In this document: piece by piece, positions 1-52,886 of the stretch
Position numbering within the stretch: the stretch's first letter is position 1
How the letters are laid out: every line of letters begins with the position of its first letter
Source: Hamiltosporidium tvaerminnensis FI-OER-3-3
Lineage: Eukaryota; Fungi; Microsporidia
Length of the DNA stretch: 64,000 bases
Direction: 5' to 3'
NCBI GenBank assembly: GCA_022605425.2
Contig: CM061246.1
Location: 620,001-684,000, forward strand
Program-made: the position numbers and the translations under genes
Notes under the pieces: model-generated
Database searches by the model: none
The model's input: only the letters and a program-made list of their open reading frames with translations
Told to the model about the DNA's origin: nothing

Positions 1-29
1 ATATCCACATTTAGACTTCGGTTCTAGAA
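1..29 (-). mobile_element. Fragment of a related LINE 3' UTR (continues outside the window)
   Basis: 1-29 atatccacatttagacttcggttctagaa matches 317-345 atatccgcaatcggacttcggttctagaa. Confidence 0.6.
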
Positions 30-191
30 TATATACAGGTAAGAAAACTATAACAGTACAAGTCTTAGATTTAAAAATTTTGAAAACTTTGAAGCAAAGG
101 AAAAGAAATGATAAATAAAAATACTGATTTTTTCTCAATTAAAAATCTCGATGCTGTCTTTTGAAAATAGTTTACTTATATATAAAGGGAT

Positions 192-3100
192 TTTTTAAAA
201 TAAAATAAAATAAAATAAAATAAAATAAAATAAAATTCGGTTTATTTTCCTTAAGATCAGCCAAATCTACAACACACAAAATTCCTTATAAACCGACCCG
301 GCTATGTATAGCCACCATATCCGCAATCGGACTTCGGTTCTAGAAGGTCACACGTCTCCCTTTATCCCACACATACACATTTTAAGTTAACACAACCTGG
401 TTTTATTGCAAACCATTAAGGATCTGTCTTCTTTGAGGCATTACTGCTCCAATAAACTTCACCAAAGCCATGCCAACTCGATTTTGCTGCAGCCCAGCAG
501 CTTGCCACTCCCCTTCCAAGAGCACTCCTAACACCTTTAATCCTAAATTCCCTACAGCATCAGAAGATTTCAAACATTTTACAACTTTTCTCGTAACCTG
601 AGCTGTAAACATCAACCGCTCCACTTGCCACCTCTTACACATGAACACTAGGTGGCACAAAGTTTCTCGGACTGGTTCCTCGCAACATGGACAGCGTTCC
701 CTATACCTATTCGGTAATCTTCCTAAAGCTGCCAGTTGCGGACTAAATTTAACCAGTCCTATTCTGAATCTACGCAGCATCCTAATACTGCTAGCTAACA
801 CCCTGTTGTTTAGCTCTGCGTAGATCCACTTATAACCACTATTAAGACCCCACAGCCTACGTAAGCCACCTATAACTGACTTATCGGCTCGGTCTTGTCT
901 TTTAACAATAGCCTCTTTAATAAAGAGACTATTCTTTTTGTTACTCAAACCCGATAAAGGACTTCCAGTATAAGCTTTCATCCAGATTCGGGTTTGAGTA
1001 ACCCACGTCCTCTTCCTCGCTGTAAACTTACCATTGAGCAAGTCCCGGATGATCGTTCTGCTTTCTTGCCATTTCAAAAAGCCTCTTACACGTGACATAG
1101 CTGCCTTTTCATATAAAGGCTGGATGTCACACTCTCTGAAAGCTGCCAGCTGGGCAAAATTCTCTCGACATCCAAAAGCTGCTGCCAAAGAGCGTGTAAC
1201 GCCGCAACCTACAGATACTATTCTGACCTTGCTCATTCCCCACAATTCGCTCCCATACATTACAATGGGTATAATGCATGCTTTTATAATCAGAAGTTTA
1301 AAATAAAGCGGAACTTCTGATCTGCAGAGGAATGGCATAGCATTTTTTCGGACCGCAAACACAGCTTTTTTTCTCCCAATGAGCATTTCTTTTAGAGAAA
1401 ACGTGCGGTCCAAAACAATGCCTAGGTATCTGTAGGTTTCAACCACCGGGACTGCTTTTTCACCTATCATTACTTTACCTGTAAGACCTGGGGGAAGTAA
1501 CAACCCACACTTATCTATATTAATACGCATTCCCCAGGTCTCACACCACCTCATCACTTTATCCATACTGAGTTGTACGGCAGCCACATCATCACCGAGC
1601 AGGACAGTGTCATCGGCAAACAACAGACCCGGAACCCTATAATTAAGACCCTCGCATGCTATACCATTAACACCTCTAAAAATGTCATCGATATAAAGAT
1701 CGAATAATAGAGGTGATAGCGGACAGCCTTGGCGGAGGCCGATATTATATGGGAATAGGCTTGTTGTTTTATCGCCTACTTTGACACCAACCTGTAGATC
1801 AGTGTACAGATCTCTAAGGAATCTTAGGAGTTTTCCAGAAAAGCCTTGCTCTTTTAGTTTCAAAAGGATTAGATCATGAGGAACTCTATCGTAAGCCTTT
1901 TCGAAATCGATAAATAGGCAAACAGTCTCTCTACCTCGAATAAATCTTCTCCTTTGAATTTCTAAAAGAGTTGCCACCTGAGCAACACATTCCTCTCGAG
2001 TACGAAAACCAGCTTGTTCCCGGCACAAGAGGTTATTATTCTCAGCATACAAACGCATTCGGCGTTCCACAACCTTACACAGCAGTTTAAGAAGAGTGTT
2101 TATCAGACAAATTCCACGGTAGTTTCCAGGCTTTCGTAAATCACCTTTCTTCGGTACCGGTACTATGACTGACACTCTCCAGCTGTCAGGTATTCTATTT
2201 GTCCAGGCCTCGTTCAGCACATGTGAAATGTGCTGTGCCATCAGACTTACGCCATGAGTATCCATTAGTAGAGCTTTGTACGCTTCTACTGGTACCTCAT
2301 CTAAACCACATGCTTTGTTGTTTGCTGACTCGTGCAGCGCTGAAATAACCTCTTGCCAAGCAATCAAATCATTATAATGAGCGTTGTTATCCTCGATAAG
2401 ACACTCAGATTGAGTGTCTTTGCTATGTAGCTCATCATTCATTGTTGCTAAGGAACGAAAGTGGTTGTACCAGACCTGCAACACTGTCTGCTCATCCGAA
2501 GCAATTTGGCCTTTTTCATCCAAAACCGTGCGATTGGCAGCCGAGAATTTGGGCATTCCAGCAGACCTTCTGGTCCACTGCCACACGTCTCTCATGCAGC
2601 GGTTTGTTGCCGCCGCAATACCTTTTTGTGCCCACTTTATTCTCAGCTGCCGCCTATATAGACGCTTCATTTCCTCGCACTTTCGTTTGAGGACAGCATA
2701 GGCGTTCGGATGAGCTCGGCCGGCTCTCATTTCGAAAGCAACTCTCCGTCTATCGTCAATAGTTTTTTTAAGCTTCCGAGGCAAAAATAAACTATTTCCA
2801 TCTGAAAAAGTACCTTCAAGACCCAACTTTTTTGCTACTTCTTTAACAGTTTCTGCCACATAAATCCCATGATCCGTATTGTGACCAAAACTGTTCCAGG
2901 TCGGACAGCTTATAAGCTTTTCGGCAAGTGACCGCTCAACAAACTTGCGTAAGAAGAGCTTTTTCTTGCGTACAGCTCGTGTGAGCGTGTCCACCCTAAC
3001 GTCAACAGTTACAGGAAGGTGATCCGATATATCCCATTTCCTGTGCACTTTAACTACCTCCGCCCACTCTCTTTTCAGAAACAGGCAGTAGTCAATGCAT

Positions 3101-5328
3101 CTATTGGCACCGTGTGCTGCTGCACGTGTAGCTCGCGGTGCTTCGAATAACCATTTATTCGTGCAATAGAGGTTGTTGACAGCCAGGAACCTAGCAGCCT
3201 CTTCTGGAGTCATATTCCAATCGCCCATGACTAGAATATCATCCAAACCGTTTTTCTTGTTTTCGCTAACAAGAAAAGATCCCAGAGCTTCGAGCGTTTC
3301 CGCTCTGTTGCCGTATAGTGAACATTTCGGAGGAATGTACACGTTAACAACAAGCAATTTAAACCAGCCACCAGACGCTTTTTTGCCACAAACAATGCCA
3401 GCCAAGAAGTTAGGATGTACTTCAACTGAAGATAGCGTAAGATCTAACTTACGACGCACAGCTAAAATCAGTCCTCTACCATCTTTTTCCTCCTTGTTGG
3501 CAAAGCTCTCAATCACCTCGTATCCCGGAATAACGTTCCGAGAATTCCCTGTGTAGCGTAATGTCTCTTGGAGACATAGAATGTCTGGGTGGAGTTTACC
3601 GGTCAGCATTAGAACCTCCTCTCGTTTTGATCCAAAGGAATTTACATTTAGCGTAAGTAATCTAAGATTACTATACGATTCCGTGCAAATTCTGACAGAC
3701 TTTTTTCTCCCTAGTGTATGGGTTTTGCAGTACCCAAGATGTTTCCTACTCACAGCTTGCACTGTTTCCGGGTCTATCCCACTCTCAACAGTCACATCAA
3801 GTCGTCTACGTCCATCTCGCTGTATAACTCGCTTGACAGACGTACCTTTGGAACCTCTCGCCTCTAGTGTTTCAGCAAAAACACTACGATGCCTATGCGG
3901 TACACCCCAGACAGAGTATACCGCGGGACCTGCTTTGCACGGCTTTATCTGTTGGCAGGTGTCAACAGTTCCGACAGTCCTGACTATAGGCTAGAGGAGC
4001 TCTTTGGCTCCTCAAGTACCATATCTTCTAGTCCGTAGAAGATTTTCGAGGCTTCTTGAGAGGCATTCTGAGCTGAAGTATGCTTCAGAATGCTAAGGAA
4101 CCTCCTAACCGGCGGGTTATCTTTAAATCGCTCGACCCATGAGAGTCTGCGCTTAAGGTCAGATAACCGCTCTCCAATCTCTTCGAGACTGCCTCTGTTA
4201 AGATAGTTATCAAACGTCTTAACATCTTTAAAGCCTGTAAAAATGGCTTTAACTTTATCCACACTGTTAGCATTCACAAGCAACTCTAACAGGCCTTCCT
4301 TAGTGAAGCCTACGTGCTTGACGTAGTAAGATTTAACGCCCCCGTTCTCTAAGACTGCTCTTAAATAAGCGGGTTTGTTTACTTTAACTCCAACTAAGTA
4401 AAGAAGCACAAACCTATTCAAGACAAATGGTGATTTGCCTTGCACAACATCCTCACACTGTGCTCTGTTTAAGTTAAGTTTCCCTCTACTCTGCTTCGAA
4501 GGTGCCTTAGTACGATCGAAGGAAGGCTTTTTGGCAGTCCGCAATTTGACGGCTCTCGGTTTACTGGCTGGGTTACCAGTTGCTTTACTCTTGGATAATT
4601 CCTTTTTTTTATCCATAAGACCTTTTCCTGAAGCACTTACGGAAGTCTTTTCAGGTAACTTTTTTTCGATAGAACGAGGAGTTGCTATCGGAGGCAGTGT
4701 GGTATTGCCCGTACCACATTCAACAGGCCTCGCCCCTTGATGGCTTACATTCATTGCACGTTGAATTTGTAAGCCTTGAGATTCTGCTGCGTTGCAGATC
4801 TGCACTTCCGCTGGGCAGACTCCAGCGGCAAGAGGGTCACCAGCATTTGCAGTCAGATCAGTAGAACTGCCAGTCCTTAACACGACCTGTTTATCCAAAG
4901 ACCGAGCTTTTGCCTTTGCAGATCGTGCGGCCAAGGTTGGCCCGAAAGACTGAGATTTCGCCTCATTTACCACCAAATTCTGCTCGGGTGGTTTCTCAGT
5001 TAGTTCTGCAGCGTTGCAGACTAACTCGCTGGCTGCTGGATCAGCCTGAGGGTCTCTGGCTCCTGCCTCTAGCCTAACCGAGGAAGCAGGTGCTACTGCC
5101 GTTATCATGCACTTGTGAGTACGGCACCTACGCGACCTTTTAGCTACTTTACGTAGCTTCTCAACTTCTTTAAAGAGTACCTCTAAAGCAATCGAGTTGG
5201 TCTTTGCCAACATAAGAGATTCTTTATATCTCTTTTCCTCTTCTTCTAATTTTTCCACTCTTTTTTCAAGGAGTGTTATTTTCTCAGAAGCAAGTGCATA
5301 AAGAACAGACAAAGTCTGTGCCTCTTTC
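192..5328 (-). mobile_element. Intact non-LTR retrotransposon (LINE; APE-RT, two ORFs) with (TTTTA)n tail and 14-bp TSD
   Basis: ORF1 plus APE-RT ORF2; (TAAAA)n at ~196-235 on + is the (TTTTA)n tail; ATATATAAAGGGAT at both 178-191 and 5329-5342; visibly more GC-rich than host DNA. Confidence 0.95.
403..3990 (-). CDS. LINE ORF2: APE endonuclease, reverse transcriptase, C-terminal zinc finger
   Basis: APE motifs LLTLNVN, LCLQET, MGDWN, IDY, SDH; RT motifs QAGFR, IDFEKAYD, LRQGCPLSP, LFADD, YLG; C-terminal CPCC...H...C. Frame is open from 3990 (ORF track uses GTG at 3795); true start unknown. Confidence 0.95.
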   Translation of the reverse strand, partial: PIVRTVGTVDTCQQIKPCKAGPAVYSVWGVPHRHRSVFAETLEARGSKGTSVKRVIQRDGRRRLDVTVESGIDPETVQAVSRKHLGYCKTHTLGRKKSVRICTESYSNLRLLTLNVNSFGSKREEVLMLTGKLHPDILCLQETLRYTGNSRNVIPGYEVIESFANKEEKDGRGLILAVRRKLDLTLSSVEVHPNFLAGIVCGKKASGGWFKLLVVNVYIPPKCSLYGNRAETLEALGSFLVSENKKNGLDDILVMGDWNMTPEEAARFLAVNNLYCTNKWLFEAPRATRAAAHGANRCIDYCLFLKREWAEVVKVHRKWDISDHLPVTVDVRVDTLTRAVRKKKLFLRKFVERSLAEKLISCPTWNSFGHNTDHGIYVAETVKEVAKKLGLEGTFSDGNSLFLPRKLKKTIDDRRRVAFEMRAGRAHPNAYAVLKRKCEEMKRLYRRQLRIKWAQKGIAAATNRCMRDVWQWTRRSAGMPKFSAANRTVLDEKGQIASDEQTVLQVWYNHFRSLATMNDELHSKDTQSECLIEDNNAHYNDLIAWQEVISALHESANNKACGLDEVPVEAYKALLMDTHGVSLMAQHISHVLNEAWTNRIPDSWRVSVIVPVPKKGDLRKPGNYRGICLINTLLKLLCKVVERRMRLYAENNNLLCREQAGFRTREECVAQVATLLEIQRRRFIRGRETVCLFIDFEKAYDRVPHDLILLKLKEQGFSGKLLRFLRDLYTDLQVGVKVGDKTTSLFPYNIGLRQGCPLSPLLFDLYIDDIFRGVNGIACEGLNYRVPGLLFADDTVLLGDDVAAVQLSMDKVMRWCETWGMRINIDKCGLLLPPGLTGKVMIGEKAVPVVETYRYLGIVLDRTFSLKEMLIGRKKAVFAVRKNAMPFLCRSEVPLYFKLLIIKACIIPIVMYGSELWGMSKVRIVSVGCGVTRSLAAAFGCRENFAQLAAFRECDIQPLYEKAAMSRVRGFLKWQESRTIIRDLLNGKFTARKRTWVTQTRIWMKAYTGSPLSGLSNKKNSLFIKEAIVKRQDRADKSVIGGLRRLWGLNSGYKWIYAELNNRVLASSIRMLRRFRIGLVKFSPQLAALGRLPNRYRERCPCCEEPVRETLCHLVFMCKRWQVERLMFTAQVTRKVVKCLKSSDAVGNLGLKVLGVLLEGEWQAAGLQQNRVGMALVKFIGAVMPQRRQILNGLQ

Positions 5329-5330
5329 AT
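3984..5330 (-). CDS. LINE ORF1 (N-terminal coiled coil, basic low-complexity linker, RRM-like C-terminus)
   Basis: 448-aa ORF directly upstream of ORF2 on the same strand; heptad-like LLEKRVEKLEEEEK; beta-alpha-beta-like LLYLVGV...GLLELLV. Confidence 0.85.
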   Translation of the reverse strand: MKEAQTLSVLYALASEKITLLEKRVEKLEEEEKRYKESLMLAKTNSIALEVLFKEVEKLRKVAKRSRRCRTHKCMITAVAPASSVRLEAGARDPQADPAASELVCNAAELTEKPPEQNLVVNEAKSQSFGPTLAARSAKAKARSLDKQVVLRTGSSTDLTANAGDPLAAGVCPAEVQICNAAESQGLQIQRAMNVSHQGARPVECGTGNTTLPPIATPRSIEKKLPEKTSVSASGKGLMDKKKELSKSKATGNPASKPRAVKLRTAKKPSFDRTKAPSKQSRGKLNLNRAQCEDVVQGKSPFVLNRFVLLYLVGVKVNKPAYLRAVLENGGVKSYYVKHVGFTKEGLLELLVNANSVDKVKAIFTGFKDVKTFDNYLNRGSLEEIGERLSDLKRRLSWVERFKDNPPVRRFLSILKHTSAQNASQEASKIFYGLEDMVLEEPKSSSSL

Positions 5331-5651
5331 ATATAAAGGGATAAATATATTTAAAAATCAAATTGGTAATGAGATATCCAGAATAGATAAAGACTCAAAT
5401 CTTTAAAAAGTGATATTTTAAAACATATCTGGTATGTGTCTTTTTATAAGTGATAATTAGTGGAATTTATTTAAATGCCACATGCCTAATGTTAAAAAAG
5501 CATTTGCGTTTTTGCTTAGATCCTAATTTTGTAAGGTGATTAAATGTTTCTTTCGTTATATTTATCCTATTTGAATTTTTTTTGAAATCATTTTTTTGTT
5601 TACTTTTTTTTTAGTTTTATTAGTTTTTAATCCTTTATATTTTTTTTGATG

Positions 5652-5957
5652 TTTGATCACTCTTGGCGTTACCCAACGAGAACCACGTGGAGGTGGTGAT
5701 CATCTCTCGTCATGAGTGCTTGCTAGCCTCATCCACTCGCGATCTTGTGGATTACAGCTGCAGCACCCAAGCACGTCGTCTTCATGCTAGATAGTACAGT
5801 AGGGCCACGTTGAAGCTTAGAGGCCTTCAGCTCTTCCGTGCCAGGACGTTGCTTAGCCCGTACCTTACCAGATATAGGCACGACAAGAGGTCCTGCAGAT
5901 TCGTTCCTTTCGTACTAGCATCTGCTCCCTTAGTACCGTAGCAGTAGTGTAAAACTA

Positions 5958-5995
<38 letters not shown>

Positions 5996-6099
5996 TGTTA
6001 GTGGGTGAACAATCCAACACTAGGTGCCTTCTGCTGCACCATGATAGGAAGAGCCGACATCGAAGAATCAAAAAGCAGCGTCGCTATGGTCGCTCGGCT

Positions 6100-6131
<32 letters not shown>

Positions 6132-6407
6132 ACGTCACCCATTGCTAGATGCTCTGTAAGCAATGGGATCGCTAGGCCTGGGTTTCCCCTCGTATTACCG
6201 TGTAGTAATACGTCAGGGTGGCTTTTGCCCTTGGACTACACCCTCGGTTTCTCTCCGAAGTTAGCCACCCTTAGGCCATCTGCGTTGTAGTCTAGCAGAT
6301 GTACCGCCCCAGTCAAACTCCCCATCTGACAAATACGGGTCGCTTGCACAGCTAGTGGTCTTTCAGTTGCCCCACCTTGCTACAGCTGCACAAGACCCCG
6401 GCGTCAC

Positions 6408-6444
<37 letters not shown>

Positions 6445-6541
6445 GCATAGCCAAGACCGTTCCCTTGGCTCGTGGGTTCGCAGGTTGTTAGTCGGGACAG
6501 TGGGAATCTCGTTGCTCCTTTCGTGCGCGTCACTAATTAGG

Positions 6542-6595
<54 letters not shown>

Positions 6596-8272
6596 CTGCG
6601 TATACAGCCCGACCTGTCTTAACAGCTGGGCACTGGGCAGAATTCACTTTGTGTCCACGTACTACACCACCACAAAGCTATGTTTTTATTAAACAGTCGG
6701 ATTCCCCGTAACTAAAAGTTCTAATTCCTTAGAGCTAATCCTTTTCCCGAGGTTACGGATCTAATTTGCCGAATTCCCTAACTAACGTTTGTCCTATCGC
6801 TTCCGGTATACACCGTACGGAGCCCTGCTGCGGTCGGTACGGTCATCTAGGTCATAAAGGTATTTTTTCACGGATCCCAGCTAAGACAATTGCATATGCC
6901 TGTATTGCTCTGTACAACACGCTACATACAGTACTGCTACAAGGAATGGGTACCTCCTTGTTGTCGTGCCTAAGACGTAAACACCATATTTACTGTTGCC
7001 AAATACCTAGATGGCTCGGGAATATCAACCCGATTCCCTGTCGAGATCTCAGGACCGGCTAACCTTCTCCTTATGAAATCTTAGAAGAACCCTTCTCCTG
7101 AAGCCTTCGCGATTCACACACGAATTGTAACTACTACCACCAAGATCAGCACTAGTGTATGCTCCACTTTACCTCACGGTAAACCTTCTGCACATACACC
7201 ACGCCCATCTACCTATAAGTACTGCATCGGGTCTGGCCTTGTACCGTCCATTTTCGGCGCACATGAATTCGGTAGGTACGTTGCAACACGTTTCTTACCG
7301 GATGCCAACCTCCATGGCCACCGCCCTACTGTCACAATTCATCTACGGCCTTAAGAAAAACCAGATTAGGCCCCTTATCAGTACGTCAGGTTGATCCCTC
7401 TTCGCACGTCCTGCTTACCAGAACGCGCCCACTAGACACATATATAATCGCTATTCTTTAGTACAAGAATAACACGTACACGTTCGCAGTTCGTCGGTAT
7501 GTGGAGATTGCTCCCCTTTCATCCCGCCGTTCCTCTACCGCATAATACTAAGTAACTTGTGTCTGCTGTCCTGAGAGACATTTCGATGGGAACCAGCTAC
7601 CCGGCTGTTCGATTGGTCTTTCGCCCCTACACCCAGCTCAAACCATCGATTTGCGCGTCAGAACAAGTTTAGGTCCTCCACCATCCTTTCGAATGGCTTC
7701 AACCTGGCCAGGTGTAGTTCACAGCCCTTCGGGTCGCATCCGAACAGCTATATCTGCTTTCGCTACGCTTAAAGGAAACCCCCCTTTAACTTGCTATGCA
7801 GATGCACTCCTTGGTCCGTGTTTCAAGACGGGTCCTGTTATCAGGATACTCAATACAATTTCACGTCTTTGCACTTTTTAGCTTTTCACCTTTCCATCGC
7901 TGTACTATTACGCTATCGGTCTCCGCTCATATTTAGCCTTAGATGGAACCCACCACCTCTTCAGGCTGCATTACCAAGCAACCCTACTCTGCCCATTACT
8001 CGTCACTACGGGGCTATCACCCTCTATGGCTTACCTGTCCCGGTAATTCGTTACGACGATCTTAACAATGCCCGGAGGCTTACATTCGGGGCTATTTCTT
8101 GTTCGCTCGCCGCTACTACAGAAATCCTAGTTAGTTTTTGTTCCTCCCCTTAATAATATGCTTAAGTCCAGGGGGTAGTCAGGCATTTACAAATGCCGTT
8201 CGGCCTTAGTTCTCGGAAACTATTCCGGCCTTCCTCGGATACGGAGCCAAGTGATCCCTTGTATGAGTTTAA
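5652..8272 (-). rRNA. Large-subunit rRNA with 5.8S region fused at the 5' end (microsporidian type)
   Basis: Reverse complements of universal LSU motifs (GACCGTCGCGAGACAGG, AGTACGAAAGGAAC sarcin-ricin loop, CCCGTCTTGAAACACGGACCAAGG, GACTTAAGCATAT); 5.8S-like GGATCACTTGGCTC near 8245-8258; no ITS2; ends approximate. Confidence 0.95.
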
Positions 8273-8302: not shown

Positions 8303-9605
8303 CACTGATCCTGCTGCAGGTTCTCCTACAGCAACCTTGTTACGACTTGTATCCAATCTAATCCTACGTCCTCAGAAGGAAAACCCTCTTCGAACATAGC
8401 ACCATCTTAGATAACGACGGGCGGTGTGTACAAAGAACAGGGACGCAGTCGTCGCCCGTTAGTGACACGCGACTACTAGGAATTCCTGGTTCATGCGTCC
8501 ATTACAGAACGCAATCCCAACCGAGTTATCCTTTATCTTTACAATATACCTAGAAATAACATTGTAGTGCGCGTGCAGCCCAGAACATCTAAGGGCATCA
8601 CAGACCTGTTATAGCCCCCTCCTTCCTGAAACTTATAGTCCCCAGTCGCCGTAGCTGAGGGTCTCACACATTACAGCAATAAACCTAAAAGTCACCTCAC
8701 ATGTTGTGAACGGCCATGCACCACTTAGTCGTACTCATCAAAGATTCGTCATACAACTGGCCCTGGTAAGTTGTCCCGCGTTGAGTCAAATTAAGCCGCA
8801 CACTCCACTCCTGGTGGTGTCCTTCCGTCAATTTCTTCAAGTTTCAATCTTGCGATCGTACTATCCCCATAGCCCATATACTTGATTTCTCGTGGGTACC
8901 ACTACGTAACACCCAGTTGGCATAGTTTACGGCCGGAACTACAGGGGTCTCTAATCACCTTTGCTCCTCCGGCTTACGTCCTTGATCACCGGAAACGTAC
9001 TGGACGACAGCTTTCGCTTCGGTTTGTCCTACGTAGGTCGTCAACTTTCACCTCTCGCTACGCAATACAGTCGCCCTCTTCCGCTCCTACATGCTAACCT
9101 AGAATGCCAATACACTCCATGAAGAAAGTGTCTTCTAGCATCCCTGTCAACACTGACTACGGACCTTTTAAATGCAGCAATGCACTATGACACTCCTGGA
9201 GCTGGAATTACCGCGGCTGCTGGCACCAGACTTGCCCTCCAGTCAATCACCGGTATTCTACCCCGGTTACAAAATATACGTCTCATAACTGCCTCTCTCC
9301 AATTGGGCAAGTTTCGCGCCTGCTGCTGTCCTTAGACCTGGTAGCCGTTTCTCAGGCTCCCTCTCCGGAATCAAACCCTGATCCCCCGTACCCGTTAAAG
9401 CCATCGTACGCCCTTACCGTACGATAAAACTGATGGGTCGGCGTCTTACTCGTGTTATTAGCCACAGTTTCCCGCGGTTATCCTTCCTACACGATTAAAT
9501 AATCACCGTTCTACTGAGCCGTTCGCAGTTCCACTTTCGCTTCACCAGACTTGCATGGCTTAATCCCAGAGACAAGCATCCTCGTCAGGCAGAATCAACC
9601 TGTTG
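8303..9605 (-). rRNA. Small-subunit rRNA (~1.3 kb, reduced microsporidian type)
   Basis: Begins CAACAGGTTGATTCTGCCTGAC; contains GTGCCAGCAGCCGCGGTAA and GTACACACCGCCCGTC; ends GAACCTGCAGCAGGATCA. Confidence 0.97.
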
Positions 9606-19902: not shown

Positions 19903-19914
19903 TTTATCCCTTTA
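19903..19914 (+). promoter_or_regulatory. Microsporidian CCC-type start-proximal motif (representative instance)
   Basis: CCC within ~10 nt of the ATG in KRR1, this gene, NMT1, RNA15, thioesterase, SulP, RPL12, SDA1 and the 31570 ORF. Confidence 0.8.
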
Positions 19915-20484
19915 ATGACTCAAAATCGCTCAACGATTTGCATTTCTAATTTTCCAGACAAAGTCACAGAACATCAAATATTAGAAATTTTTAAACATTT
20001 CGGAAAAATATTGAATGTATTTTCAGATATAAATACAATATATATAACTTATTCAGAATATAGTTCTGCTTCATGTGCTATTTCTCTAAACAAAACAATT
20101 ATTGGAAATAAAAAAATTTTAGTTCAATTTGCCGATGAAAGTAATATAAATTTCAAGAAAAATAAAAAAAAAATTATCGATAATCATAATTTATGTTCAG
20201 AAAGTTGTCAAAATATTGAAAATATACATTCTGATAACAAAAATATTTCTCGATATCTCGTATTAAATAATTTTTATGATAAAAATGAGCCAGATTCACT
20301 TATTGATCTTCAAAACGAGTGTTTAAAATATGTAAATGAAATTTGTATTCAGTTTGAAAATGATTATGTTGTTGTAGAATGTCAGAATATTAAAGATGCA
20401 AAGAAATTGTTTAATGTATTACATACCAGATGGTATAACAATAGAAGAGTTTATTGTAAGTTTAAAAAATCAATTGAAAATTAA
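19915..20484 (+). CDS. RRM plus UHM splicing-factor-like protein (RBM39/PUF60/U2AF65 type)
   Basis: N-terminal RRM (ICISNFP, FKHFGKI, YITY); C-terminal UHM-like LVLNN...DLQNECLKY...LHTRWYNNRRV. Confidence 0.7.
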   Translation: MTQNRSTICISNFPDKVTEHQILEIFKHFGKILNVFSDINTIYITYSEYSSASCAISLNKTIIGNKKILVQFADESNINFKKNKKKIIDNHNLCSESCQNIENIHSDNKNISRYLVLNNFYDKNEPDSLIDLQNECLKYVNEICIQFENDYVVVECQNIKDAKKLFNVLHTRWYNNRRVYCKFKKSIEN

Positions 20485-50945: not shown

Positions 50946-52886
50946 ATGATATTTTTTCTCTTCTTGTATCGTGTGTTCTTAACATCTCCTTTGGTTAGCA
51001 ATGGACCTTTTAGACTTACTGTGGCAAACAATGAAAATCTAGTGTTGACATCTCACAACGCTTCGGTGAGAATGAAGGATATTGCAACCGCAACTGGGGT
51101 GAGTGAAGTTATAATGGAAAAGGCAGATCCACAAAGTAGTGATATGTATCGCATTAGAATAGGACAGAAATATCTCTGTAAAAAACCTTTTGATGCAGGC
51201 GTAGTTGCGTGTGATACAATGGATTCAAATAGTGTTTGGAAGGTCGAAACCGGGCCTGGTGGATTTGTTATGAGAAATGAAAGGGCTTGCTTGGTTAAAG
51301 CCGCACAGGATAATAATACTAAGCTCGGTGGGTTTTATCTCAATACAAAAGATTGTAATGATCAAAATTCTGAAAAATATTTTAGATTTGTTCCAACACA
51401 AACAACACAACCTACAGTTTTATACACACCTCCGCCAGATGCGACCCAGCAAGTTCAATATAGCAATGTGAGTATTGGACAAAGCCCTAACGGTTCTACC
51501 GTCATTACACAAAATAGTTCGGTTATACAAGGTGATAATACAATTGAAGATAAAACAGTGGTTGTTCAATGCGATGATCAACCAAGTGGATGTGAACAGC
51601 AACCATCATATACTTATAGTACTGTTCCACAAACTGTTCCTGTATATGAACCACAGCCTGTTTATGAAAGTTTTAACAGTGTAAATATTCAACCACAACC
51701 AACCGCTATTGTTGAAGCCCCCGTGGAACCCGTATATGTGCAAAATTTTGTTCCATCTGCACCCGTTCCTCCGCCTGTAGTTACACATCCTATCCCAAGA
51801 CCTATGCCTGTTCCGAGAAATGAACCCGCGCAACCTCAAGTTATAATTCCGAGAATAGAACCAAGTGTCCAACCAGTTGGGCCACCCGTTTTGCATCCCA
51901 TCCAAAGGCCTATTCCACAGCCAGTTATGCAACCCATTCCTCAGCCTATGCCTCAACCTGTAATGCAGCCTATTCCACAGCCCATTGTGCAACCGATTCC
52001 GCCGCCTCAACCACAACCCGTTATGATACCTATTCAGCAACCCCCGAATATTCAGCCTGTAAATCCGCCATTTGCTGTGTCGGCTCCTCCTCAACAGCCA
52101 ACACCAGTATTTAGGCCACAATTTGTTCCTCAAAATGTTGTCGAACAAAGACCCGAACCAAGTCAACTGCCATTAATTGTTCAAAAAACTCTTCCAACAC
52201 CTCCATCTCAATGTGTTGTTGCTCCGCCAAGTTCCCAACAACCCCCTATCCAATGGCCAATACAACTTCCAATTCAGCAGCCAACTTTGGAAAGACAAAT
52301 TGGATTTACACTTCCTTCACCAAAAGAGAACAAACCATCCGAAGCATGTATAGTAGAACCAAGCCCAGTCAATTTTGGTACCAATAATTTTAAAATGTCG
52401 TATCTTCCAGCCCCGCAAAAAAACATCAGTGATCTCTACACACCTTGCCATGCGGGTATGCAGGGATGTGAGTCTACCAACAAAGTAGCTTATGTGAATC
52501 CACAACAACCAAGAATTGTGCCAAGTGTAAGTAAAAGTGGTTGTGATGCGGCATTGAATTCTGCTTTAAGCAATGTTCCAACTTTTGTAAGAAATAGTAA
52601 CGAATGTGAAGTAACCTCTAACAATTTTACAGAATCACCATTAGTTGTAAACGATAATAAAAGCATAACGGGGGTAACTGGATGTAATGCTGGAGTAAGT
52701 GCATGTGAAGTAGTCAAGACAGATCCTCTAAATGTTGATCATATGCCTACACTGGAAGTGAGAAAAGGTTGTGAGGATCAGAGTGCATGTGCAGAAATTA
52801 ATCAACCTGGAAAAGTTAGTTTTACTGAGGACGCCAATCCAAACGGTTACATTTATATACATGGTGTACCACCTGTAAGAAATTAG
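50946..52886 (+). CDS. Secreted ricin-B-lectin-like domain protein with long Pro/Gln-rich region and Cys-containing tail
   Basis: Signal peptide; beta-trefoil-type YLC...GVVAC...W...CL...C...YF; QPVM/QPIP repeats; C-x4-5-C pairs in the C-terminus. Confidence 0.8.
   Translation: MIFFLFLYRVFLTSPLVSNGPFRLTVANNENLVLTSHNASVRMKDIATATGVSEVIMEKADPQSSDMYRIRIGQKYLCKKPFDAGVVACDTMDSNSVWKVETGPGGFVMRNERACLVKAAQDNNTKLGGFYLNTKDCNDQNSEKYFRFVPTQTTQPTVLYTPPPDATQQVQYSNVSIGQSPNGSTVITQNSSVIQGDNTIEDKTVVVQCDDQPSGCEQQPSYTYSTVPQTVPVYEPQPVYESFNSVNIQPQPTAIVEAPVEPVYVQNFVPSAPVPPPVVTHPIPRPMPVPRNEPAQPQVIIPRIEPSVQPVGPPVLHPIQRPIPQPVMQPIPQPMPQPVMQPIPQPIVQPIPPPQPQPVMIPIQQPPNIQPVNPPFAVSAPPQQPTPVFRPQFVPQNVVEQRPEPSQLPLIVQKTLPTPPSQCVVAPPSSQQPPIQWPIQLPIQQPTLERQIGFTLPSPKENKPSEACIVEPSPVNFGTNNFKMSYLPAPQKNISDLYTPCHAGMQGCESTNKVAYVNPQQPRIVPSVSKSGCDAALNSALSNVPTFVRNSNECEVTSNNFTESPLVVNDNKSITGVTGCNAGVSACEVVKTDPLNVDHMPTLEVRKGCEDQSACAEINQPGKVSFTEDANPNGYIYIHGVPPVRN

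Follow-up and report, generated by a model that had tools for sequence, protein, structure and literature searches.

R1 retrotransposons are APE-type elements with two open reading frames and a specificity for the 28S rRNA gene. A precedent for ribozyme-released elements of the rDNA is provided by R2 and the R2/R1 hybrid SIDEs (PMC3414825, PMC6765202), and the elements described here share with them an association with rDNA, an orientation in sense to the rRNA, an HDV-like ribozyme defining a 5' end, a non-autonomous partner that appears to combine the ribozyme with the 3' end of the autonomous element, and 14-bp-type duplications as in R1. R2 has a restriction-like endonuclease and one site inside 28S, neither of which is found for the LINE at this locus, whereas here an APE enzyme is associated with many spacer sites outside the rRNA; moreover, the autonomous element here carries no ribozyme, which is fixed instead in every rDNA unit. 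By its features the LINE resembles R1 (PMC3414825) in an APE-RT-CCHC ORF2, the two ORFs, duplications of about 14 bp and the proposal of rDNA co-transcription, but in contrast to the sequence-specific 28S insertion of R1 there is no fixed target sequence, all insertions lie outside the rRNA genes, and their duplications differ. L1Tc and NARTc of Trypanosoma cruzi (PMC3383444, PMC3185411) likewise pair an APE-type LINE with a short non-autonomous partner and have a 5' HDV-like ribozyme, and their 5' part doubles as an internal promoter, which parallels one alternative considered below; as described there they are dispersed and not rDNA-bound, and the ribozyme is on the autonomous element. A review of rDNA-resident elements lists only MITEs for microsporidia (PMC10946416). 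The present system is placed as a variant of ribozyme-released, rDNA-associated retroelements, and the idea that its LINE targets host promoters, the core of the original prediction, mostly falls.

The window is the whole 64,000-nucleotide stretch that was analysed of the DNA of Hamiltosporidium tvaerminnensis, a parasite of water fleas, and the assembly searched comprises 21,638,905 bases in 17 contigs. The LINE is inserted 381 nt behind the end of the LSU rRNA gene, both being on the same strand, and has the following parts:

178-191, minus strand: target-site duplication, 3' copy, 14 bp
192-5328, minus strand: LINE body, starting at nt 309 of the full-length element and thus 5'-truncated by 308 nt
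192-402, minus strand: 3' UTR, ending in a (TTTTA)n tail
403-3984, minus strand: ORF2 open frame of 1193 codons, overlapping the ORF1 stop
637-693, minus strand: C-terminal CCHC zinc knuckle (C-x2-C-x10-H-x4-C), read off the translation
1414-2157, minus strand: reverse transcriptase domain (PF00078, E 2e-34) with a FADD motif
3019-3657, minus strand: APE-type endonuclease domain (PF03372, E 4e-11)
3984-5330, minus strand: truncated ORF1 of 448 aa, in which a new Met precedes residues 104-550 of the 550 aa that make up the intact protein
5329-5342, minus strand: target-site duplication, 5' copy, 14 bp, whose last two bases are the AT of a junction-made ATG

Read on the minus strand, the 14-mers at 5342-5329 and 191-178 are identical, and the 3' junction is as originally described, with (TTTTA)n and then A's at 235-192 preceding the second copy of the 14-mer. 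APE followed by RT in ORF2, the duplication, the simple-repeat tail, 5'-truncated copies and the lack of LTRs identify the element with high confidence as a young APE-RT LINE with two ORFs, whose insertion proceeded by target-primed reverse transcription. Its ORF2 is the only uninterrupted one of the family in the assembly. The first ATG of this frame occurs only at codon 125, after 124 codons without one (window 3984-3610), and translation likely begins through a frameshift, re-initiation or a non-AUG start; relatives' ORF2 were called with a GTG start, and a conserved block of about 100 nt is common to them in that region. ORF1 has no Pfam match but is homologous to ORF1 of relatives, and its C-terminal domain, common to related elements, is predicted to adopt an RRM-like beta-alpha-beta fold (core pLDDT 85-90; the best RNA-binding matches are weak, E about 0.1). 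The 3' UTR is partly shared with a SINE and with dispersed fragments of 70-250 bp.

The junction at 5328 had been taken for the natural 5' end of a LINE without a 5' UTR of its own, its start codon completed by the target site. The duplication does supply the AT of this codon, its last two bases and G5328 forming the ATG (5330) of the 448-aa ORF. All six of the other long copies, however, extend 308 nt further upstream and carry an ATG of their own, and the collected copies have unrelated target duplications. In the most similar copy (L002, 99.1% identical over the LINE body) the additional 308 nt complete an intact 550-aa ORF1 that starts MGKRK and is in frame with the window ORF; the window ATG is therefore a product of the junction, which costs ORF1 103 residues, and this start codon is a chance product of truncation. 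Reverse transcription broke off 308 nt before the end, and an in-frame ATG arose by chance when the copy was joined to a target whose last bases are AT; random truncation into the window target yields an in-frame junction ATG in 4% of cases, and one within 10 nt in 8%. Contigs from two other sequencing runs likewise have the longer 5' end joined at 5328, and in three the site at 5330 is empty.

The copy L002 lies on the other arm of the rDNA palindrome that holds the window copy, and since its duplication (16 bp by eye, 6 bp by the automatic finder) is shifted by 5-7 bp from that of the window copy and its 3' tail also differs, it is most simply a second insertion. Five further copies (L003-L007) represent one old, decayed insertion that was copied into five rDNA palindromes and is also present in H. 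magnivora. Two loci considered as additional independent sites (P0014 and P0001) were rejected, since they correspond to that old spacer insertion as it appears in a further assembly of the species and in H. magnivora. Dispersed copies of the LINE are all short 3' fragments, and long copies are found only beside rDNA. All 10 rDNA units form five tail-to-tail palindromes (two on G000:C1 and one each on C10, C14 and C17), each centred on a host DNA spacer of about 26-28 kb that holds the same old LINE insertion, with arms up to 99% identical.

Between the LSU rRNA and the LINE is a candidate ribozyme, and the surrounding rDNA is organised as follows:

1-29, minus strand: beginning of a SINE tail truncated at its 5' end, which was inserted some 150 bp past the LINE on its downstream side and continues beyond the window
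5343-5653, minus strand: AT-rich rDNA 3' spacer from the ribozyme to the insertion site, variable between units
5654-5711, minus strand: HDV-like ribozyme of 58 nt with a minimal P4, predicted to cut just before G5711
5710-8198, minus strand: LSU rRNA gene, on the same strand as the LINE
8303-9605, minus strand: SSU rRNA gene of microsporidian type

In the 58-mer, P1, P2, P3, L3, P1.1 and the catalytic C follow one another as required, and all three helices pair; P1 is 7 bp with a G-U first pair, P3 is 3 bp, L3 is 7 nt, and GG is available for P1.1. These helices were checked by script and not with a covariance model, and MAFFT mis-aligned the short and long ribozyme forms. No sequence among 3000 shuffled ones matched the ribozyme descriptor. 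At the Rfam gathering threshold the window yields rRNA only; the ribozyme surfaced at an E-value setting, where three HDV-type models converge on 5711-5653 below their gathering scores (26.4 of 50 and 24.9 of 44 bits; best E 0.012), the missing P4 costing score. Single-strand folding gave no signal, being a method that cannot show a pseudoknot. With the known HDV-like ribozymes (RF00094, RF02682, RF01787) the 58-mer has the nested double pseudoknot in common; it differs in a P4 reduced to a few bases and in being placed at the 3' end of the LSU in each rDNA unit. The predicted cut base lies two nt after the last LSU helix, as judged against a microsporidian-type LSU that has no ribozyme. The genome contains 15 copies, in ten of ten rDNA units and in five SINEs. 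Among the rDNA units conservation continues at the rRNA level to the last ribozyme base and then collapses (two of 60 columns variable within the ribozyme, 26 of 43 in the next bin). In a literature search that took in few subscription journals, no paper was found that describes an HDV-like ribozyme from microsporidia or at the 3' end of an rRNA.

Sequencing run X2 has several long loose ends just behind the ribozyme (window 5580-5631), which suggests further insertions or spacer variants, and in it the ribozyme is also found joined to the LINE 3' end, an arrangement that fits the SINE. Read depth is zero over most of 5717-5900, possibly a filter effect. The exact ribozyme pattern has no match in the metagenome contigs. 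At L053:9110-9215, on a repeat-rich eukaryotic contig and 5.5 kb from a related LINE, there is a well-formed HDV-like ribozyme whose L3 is the same as that of the rDNA ribozyme.

The SINE is a non-coding element of about 710 nt (e.g. L036:7350-8060) with 15-bp duplications, and its six copies are all in rDNA 3' spacers (G000:C10, C17, C1 and C14), inserted up to 1.6 kb behind the LSU. Its head is a copy of window 5711-5654, three independent insertions begin at the predicted cut base G5711, and pieces of its tail are 80-92% like the 3' end of the window LINE. The body does not match relatives' 5' UTRs significantly, and derivation from such a 5' UTR is unsupported (E 3.8). At G000:C1:1232172-1233533 a whole SINE is joined directly to several LINE 3'-end pieces, as expected from template jumps.

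Three homologues of the LINE (38-44% identity) also lie behind rRNA in sense, two of them following a microsporidian SSU at distances of 61 nt (L054/L139) and 118 nt (L137) and one 276 nt behind a microsporidian-type LSU end (L140); the last of these contigs is probably chimeric upstream, where it joins animal-like rDNA to the microsporidian-like LSU end. Each of the three starts with an HDV-like fold with a longer P4, in which the letters of P1, P2 and P3 differ yet still pair, with one P1 mismatch in L054, one P2 mismatch in L137 and a bulge in L140; a further contig, L141, starts at exactly the first P1 base. They form one supported group, to which a quick tree of homologues does not join the window LINE. 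No rRNA was found alongside five other relatives, nor by BLAST with microsporidian queries, which are insensitive to other groups, at 80 distant metagenome loci. APE-type LINEs with HDV-like heads apparently reside in rDNA spacers of microsporidia, and so lead an R2-like life with another enzyme class. Unannotated ORFs stand directly behind the relatives' poly(A) tails inside the rDNA spacers (L139:6695-7273; L140:14267-15385), and the SSU-LSU gap of L139 is at least 1.6 kb even without the element.

As a whole, these features are best explained by a truncated rDNA-spacer LINE expressed through ribozyme-released read-through of the rDNA, to which we give a little under an even chance; that the LINE is expressed as an rDNA co-transcript has about even odds. 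Pol I would read through the LSU end into the spacer and the LINE, and the HDV-like ribozyme would cut before G5711, freeing a downstream RNA of ribozyme, spacer and LINE; the same cut would give the LSU rRNA its 3' end. We propose that, because a fixed ribozyme would free the downstream RNA, the LINE needs no ribozyme or leader of its own, whereas relatives in microsporidia without the fixed ribozyme carry one at their own 5' ends. The SINE has no other evident promoter at its distances behind the LSU, so read-through probably covers a LINE at +381. Against read-through, no LINE copy is headed by ribozyme and spacer, though occasional copying of such an RNA in full would be expected; the two untruncated insertions have their start at the ATG or close to it; the leader of 381 nt would lack a cap and contains five upstream ATGs; and the one RNA run mapped gave a single read. 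By homologous joining, we infer, re-insertion at that site could hide a head of ribozyme and spacer. A further-reaching version is possible but rather doubtful: the ribozyme of an rDNA-spacer LINE would have become fixed at the LSU 3' end of every Hamiltosporidium rDNA unit and would now make the mature rRNA end by self-cleavage, the LINE having dropped its own ribozyme and leader to ride the host's cut while the SINE keeps the head. If true, a eukaryotic rRNA end would be made by self-cleavage instead of by a protein nuclease, and a mobile-element ribozyme would have been taken over by a reduced parasite genome.

The starts of the LINEs bear on how they are expressed. Full-length copies had been expected to begin at the ORF1 ATG behind CCC; L002 does so exactly, whereas the L003 type has CCC directly before the ATG but has lost its 3' end and duplication, so that its 5' limit cannot be fixed. 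From these copies the family appears nearly leaderless. A Vairimorpha-type relative (L142:4110-4180), which forms a tandem array with a similar T/A tail, shares with L003:1160-1195 a 10-mer located 15-25 nt before the ORF1 ATG, possibly the trace of a short ancestral 5' UTR. The assembly also holds a second, abundant LINE family, with open frames of about 1260 aa and an RT 29% identical to that of the window family; at 133 places, amid unrelated flanks, its copies begin precisely with the ATG (G000:C12:291056, which is L143:557, and 132 others). CCC lies within 15 nt at six of the 133 (4.5%, against a background of 4%; P=0.44), so that a leaderless start is the rule for LINEs in this genome, with no targeting of promoters. 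The two families are 74% alike over their first ~50 nt (pairwise E 2e-4), and the reverse complement of this common start resembles the host T-rich plus CCC motif; it may be a promoter module or merely encode a basic N-terminal peptide. In microsporidia promoters are CCC-like, with GGG able to take the place of CCC, and 5' UTRs measure less than 7 nt (PMC2803860), which explains how LINEs here can be leaderless; those that start at the ATG show adaptation of a mobile element to near-leaderless host transcription.

Ordinary LINE promoters start transcription at +1. An internal promoter within the first ~50 coding bases could accordingly start a leaderless mRNA at the ATG, the window copy having lost it with its truncation, and the rDNA ribozyme would then serve the SINE and perhaps the rRNA but not the LINE. 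The exact ATG start of L002, the ATG starts of the second family amid unrelated flanks with CCC at background, the common ~50 nt with their motif-like reverse complement, and the short host 5' UTRs with interchangeable GGG all favour this alternative. The common start may nonetheless reflect only a Met-Gly-Lys/Arg-rich peptide in AT-rich codons, and an internal promoter leaves the restriction of long copies of the window family to rDNA unexplained; we consider it unlikely.

Less probable still, and in our estimate quite improbable, is that promoters are borrowed by survival and not by targeting, leaderless copies being silent unless they happen to land behind CCC, so that those few become sources; the window copy, whose new ATG lies behind CCC and whose ORF2 is the family's only intact one, could be such a source. 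A CCC no more than 15 nt ahead of the first ATG is present in all three independent long insertions and in none of seven short ones (Fisher P=0.008), but the three long ones occupy two sites only, one of them picked for having CCC. The CCC-ATG spacing of L002 equals that of the host gene at 19915. The empty site recovered from unoccupied rDNA units is a variant without CCC in eight of eight, and the CCC variant is present only in the two occupied units; these, however, are arms of one palindrome and 99% alike. The L003-type CCC may itself be element-derived, given the 10-mer just upstream that is shared with the Vairimorpha relative, and the second family has no CCC enrichment.

Returning to read-through of a truncated copy, the truncated junction could in principle be an assembly error, since the region is repeat-rich and this junction is not among the joints listed for other sequencing runs, but a mis-join would not make a perfect 14-bp duplication in register at both ends and unlike that of L002, and an error here is very improbable.

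The host CCC motif itself is confirmed in the window, where eight of the 16 ATG-ORFs of at least 100 aa have CCC within 15 nt as compared with 4.0% of all ATGs (P=6e-8). A 646-aa ORF at 50946-52886 stands apart in its higher G+C (about 0.4), with no Pfam match and no CCC before its ATG. The insertion site had been likened to one host gene in particular:

19903-19914, plus strand: host CCC-type motif before an RRM gene, the same 12-mer as at the insertion site, for comparison only

This 12-mer is indeed present before the ATG at 19915, but the match is unremarkable beyond the general CCC motif because its 9-mer core occurs four times in the window (1.2 expected), two of these being the duplication itself. 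Promoters of this type (PMC2803860) are not the insertion target of the window LINE family. None of the seven readable short or SINE insertions has CCC; their duplications are AT-rich and mostly 14-16 bp, in a scoring confined to junctions other than three dispersed fragments and those on C11 and C14. For the fragment on C13 the duplication is about 13 bp with one mismatch by eye (7 bp by the automatic finder). The endonuclease is without a CCC consensus, cuts AT-rich DNA and as a rule leaves duplications of 14-16 bp. The strict version of the original prediction, in which CCC promoter sites are what the endonuclease recognises and a full-length element has its start codon completed by the target, is barely tenable: two insertions did fall within 7 bp at one CCC-containing site, but the element has its own ATG 308 nt upstream, the seven other insertions are without CCC, another site lacking CCC was also struck twice, and no copy stands in front of any host gene. 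The preference of the family and its SINE is clearly regional, for the rDNA 3' spacer in sense orientation: about eight of 17 independent insertions, an approximate count since fragments provide lower bounds, are located no more than 1.7 kb behind the LSU, all in sense, in a zone that makes up 0.08% of the genome.
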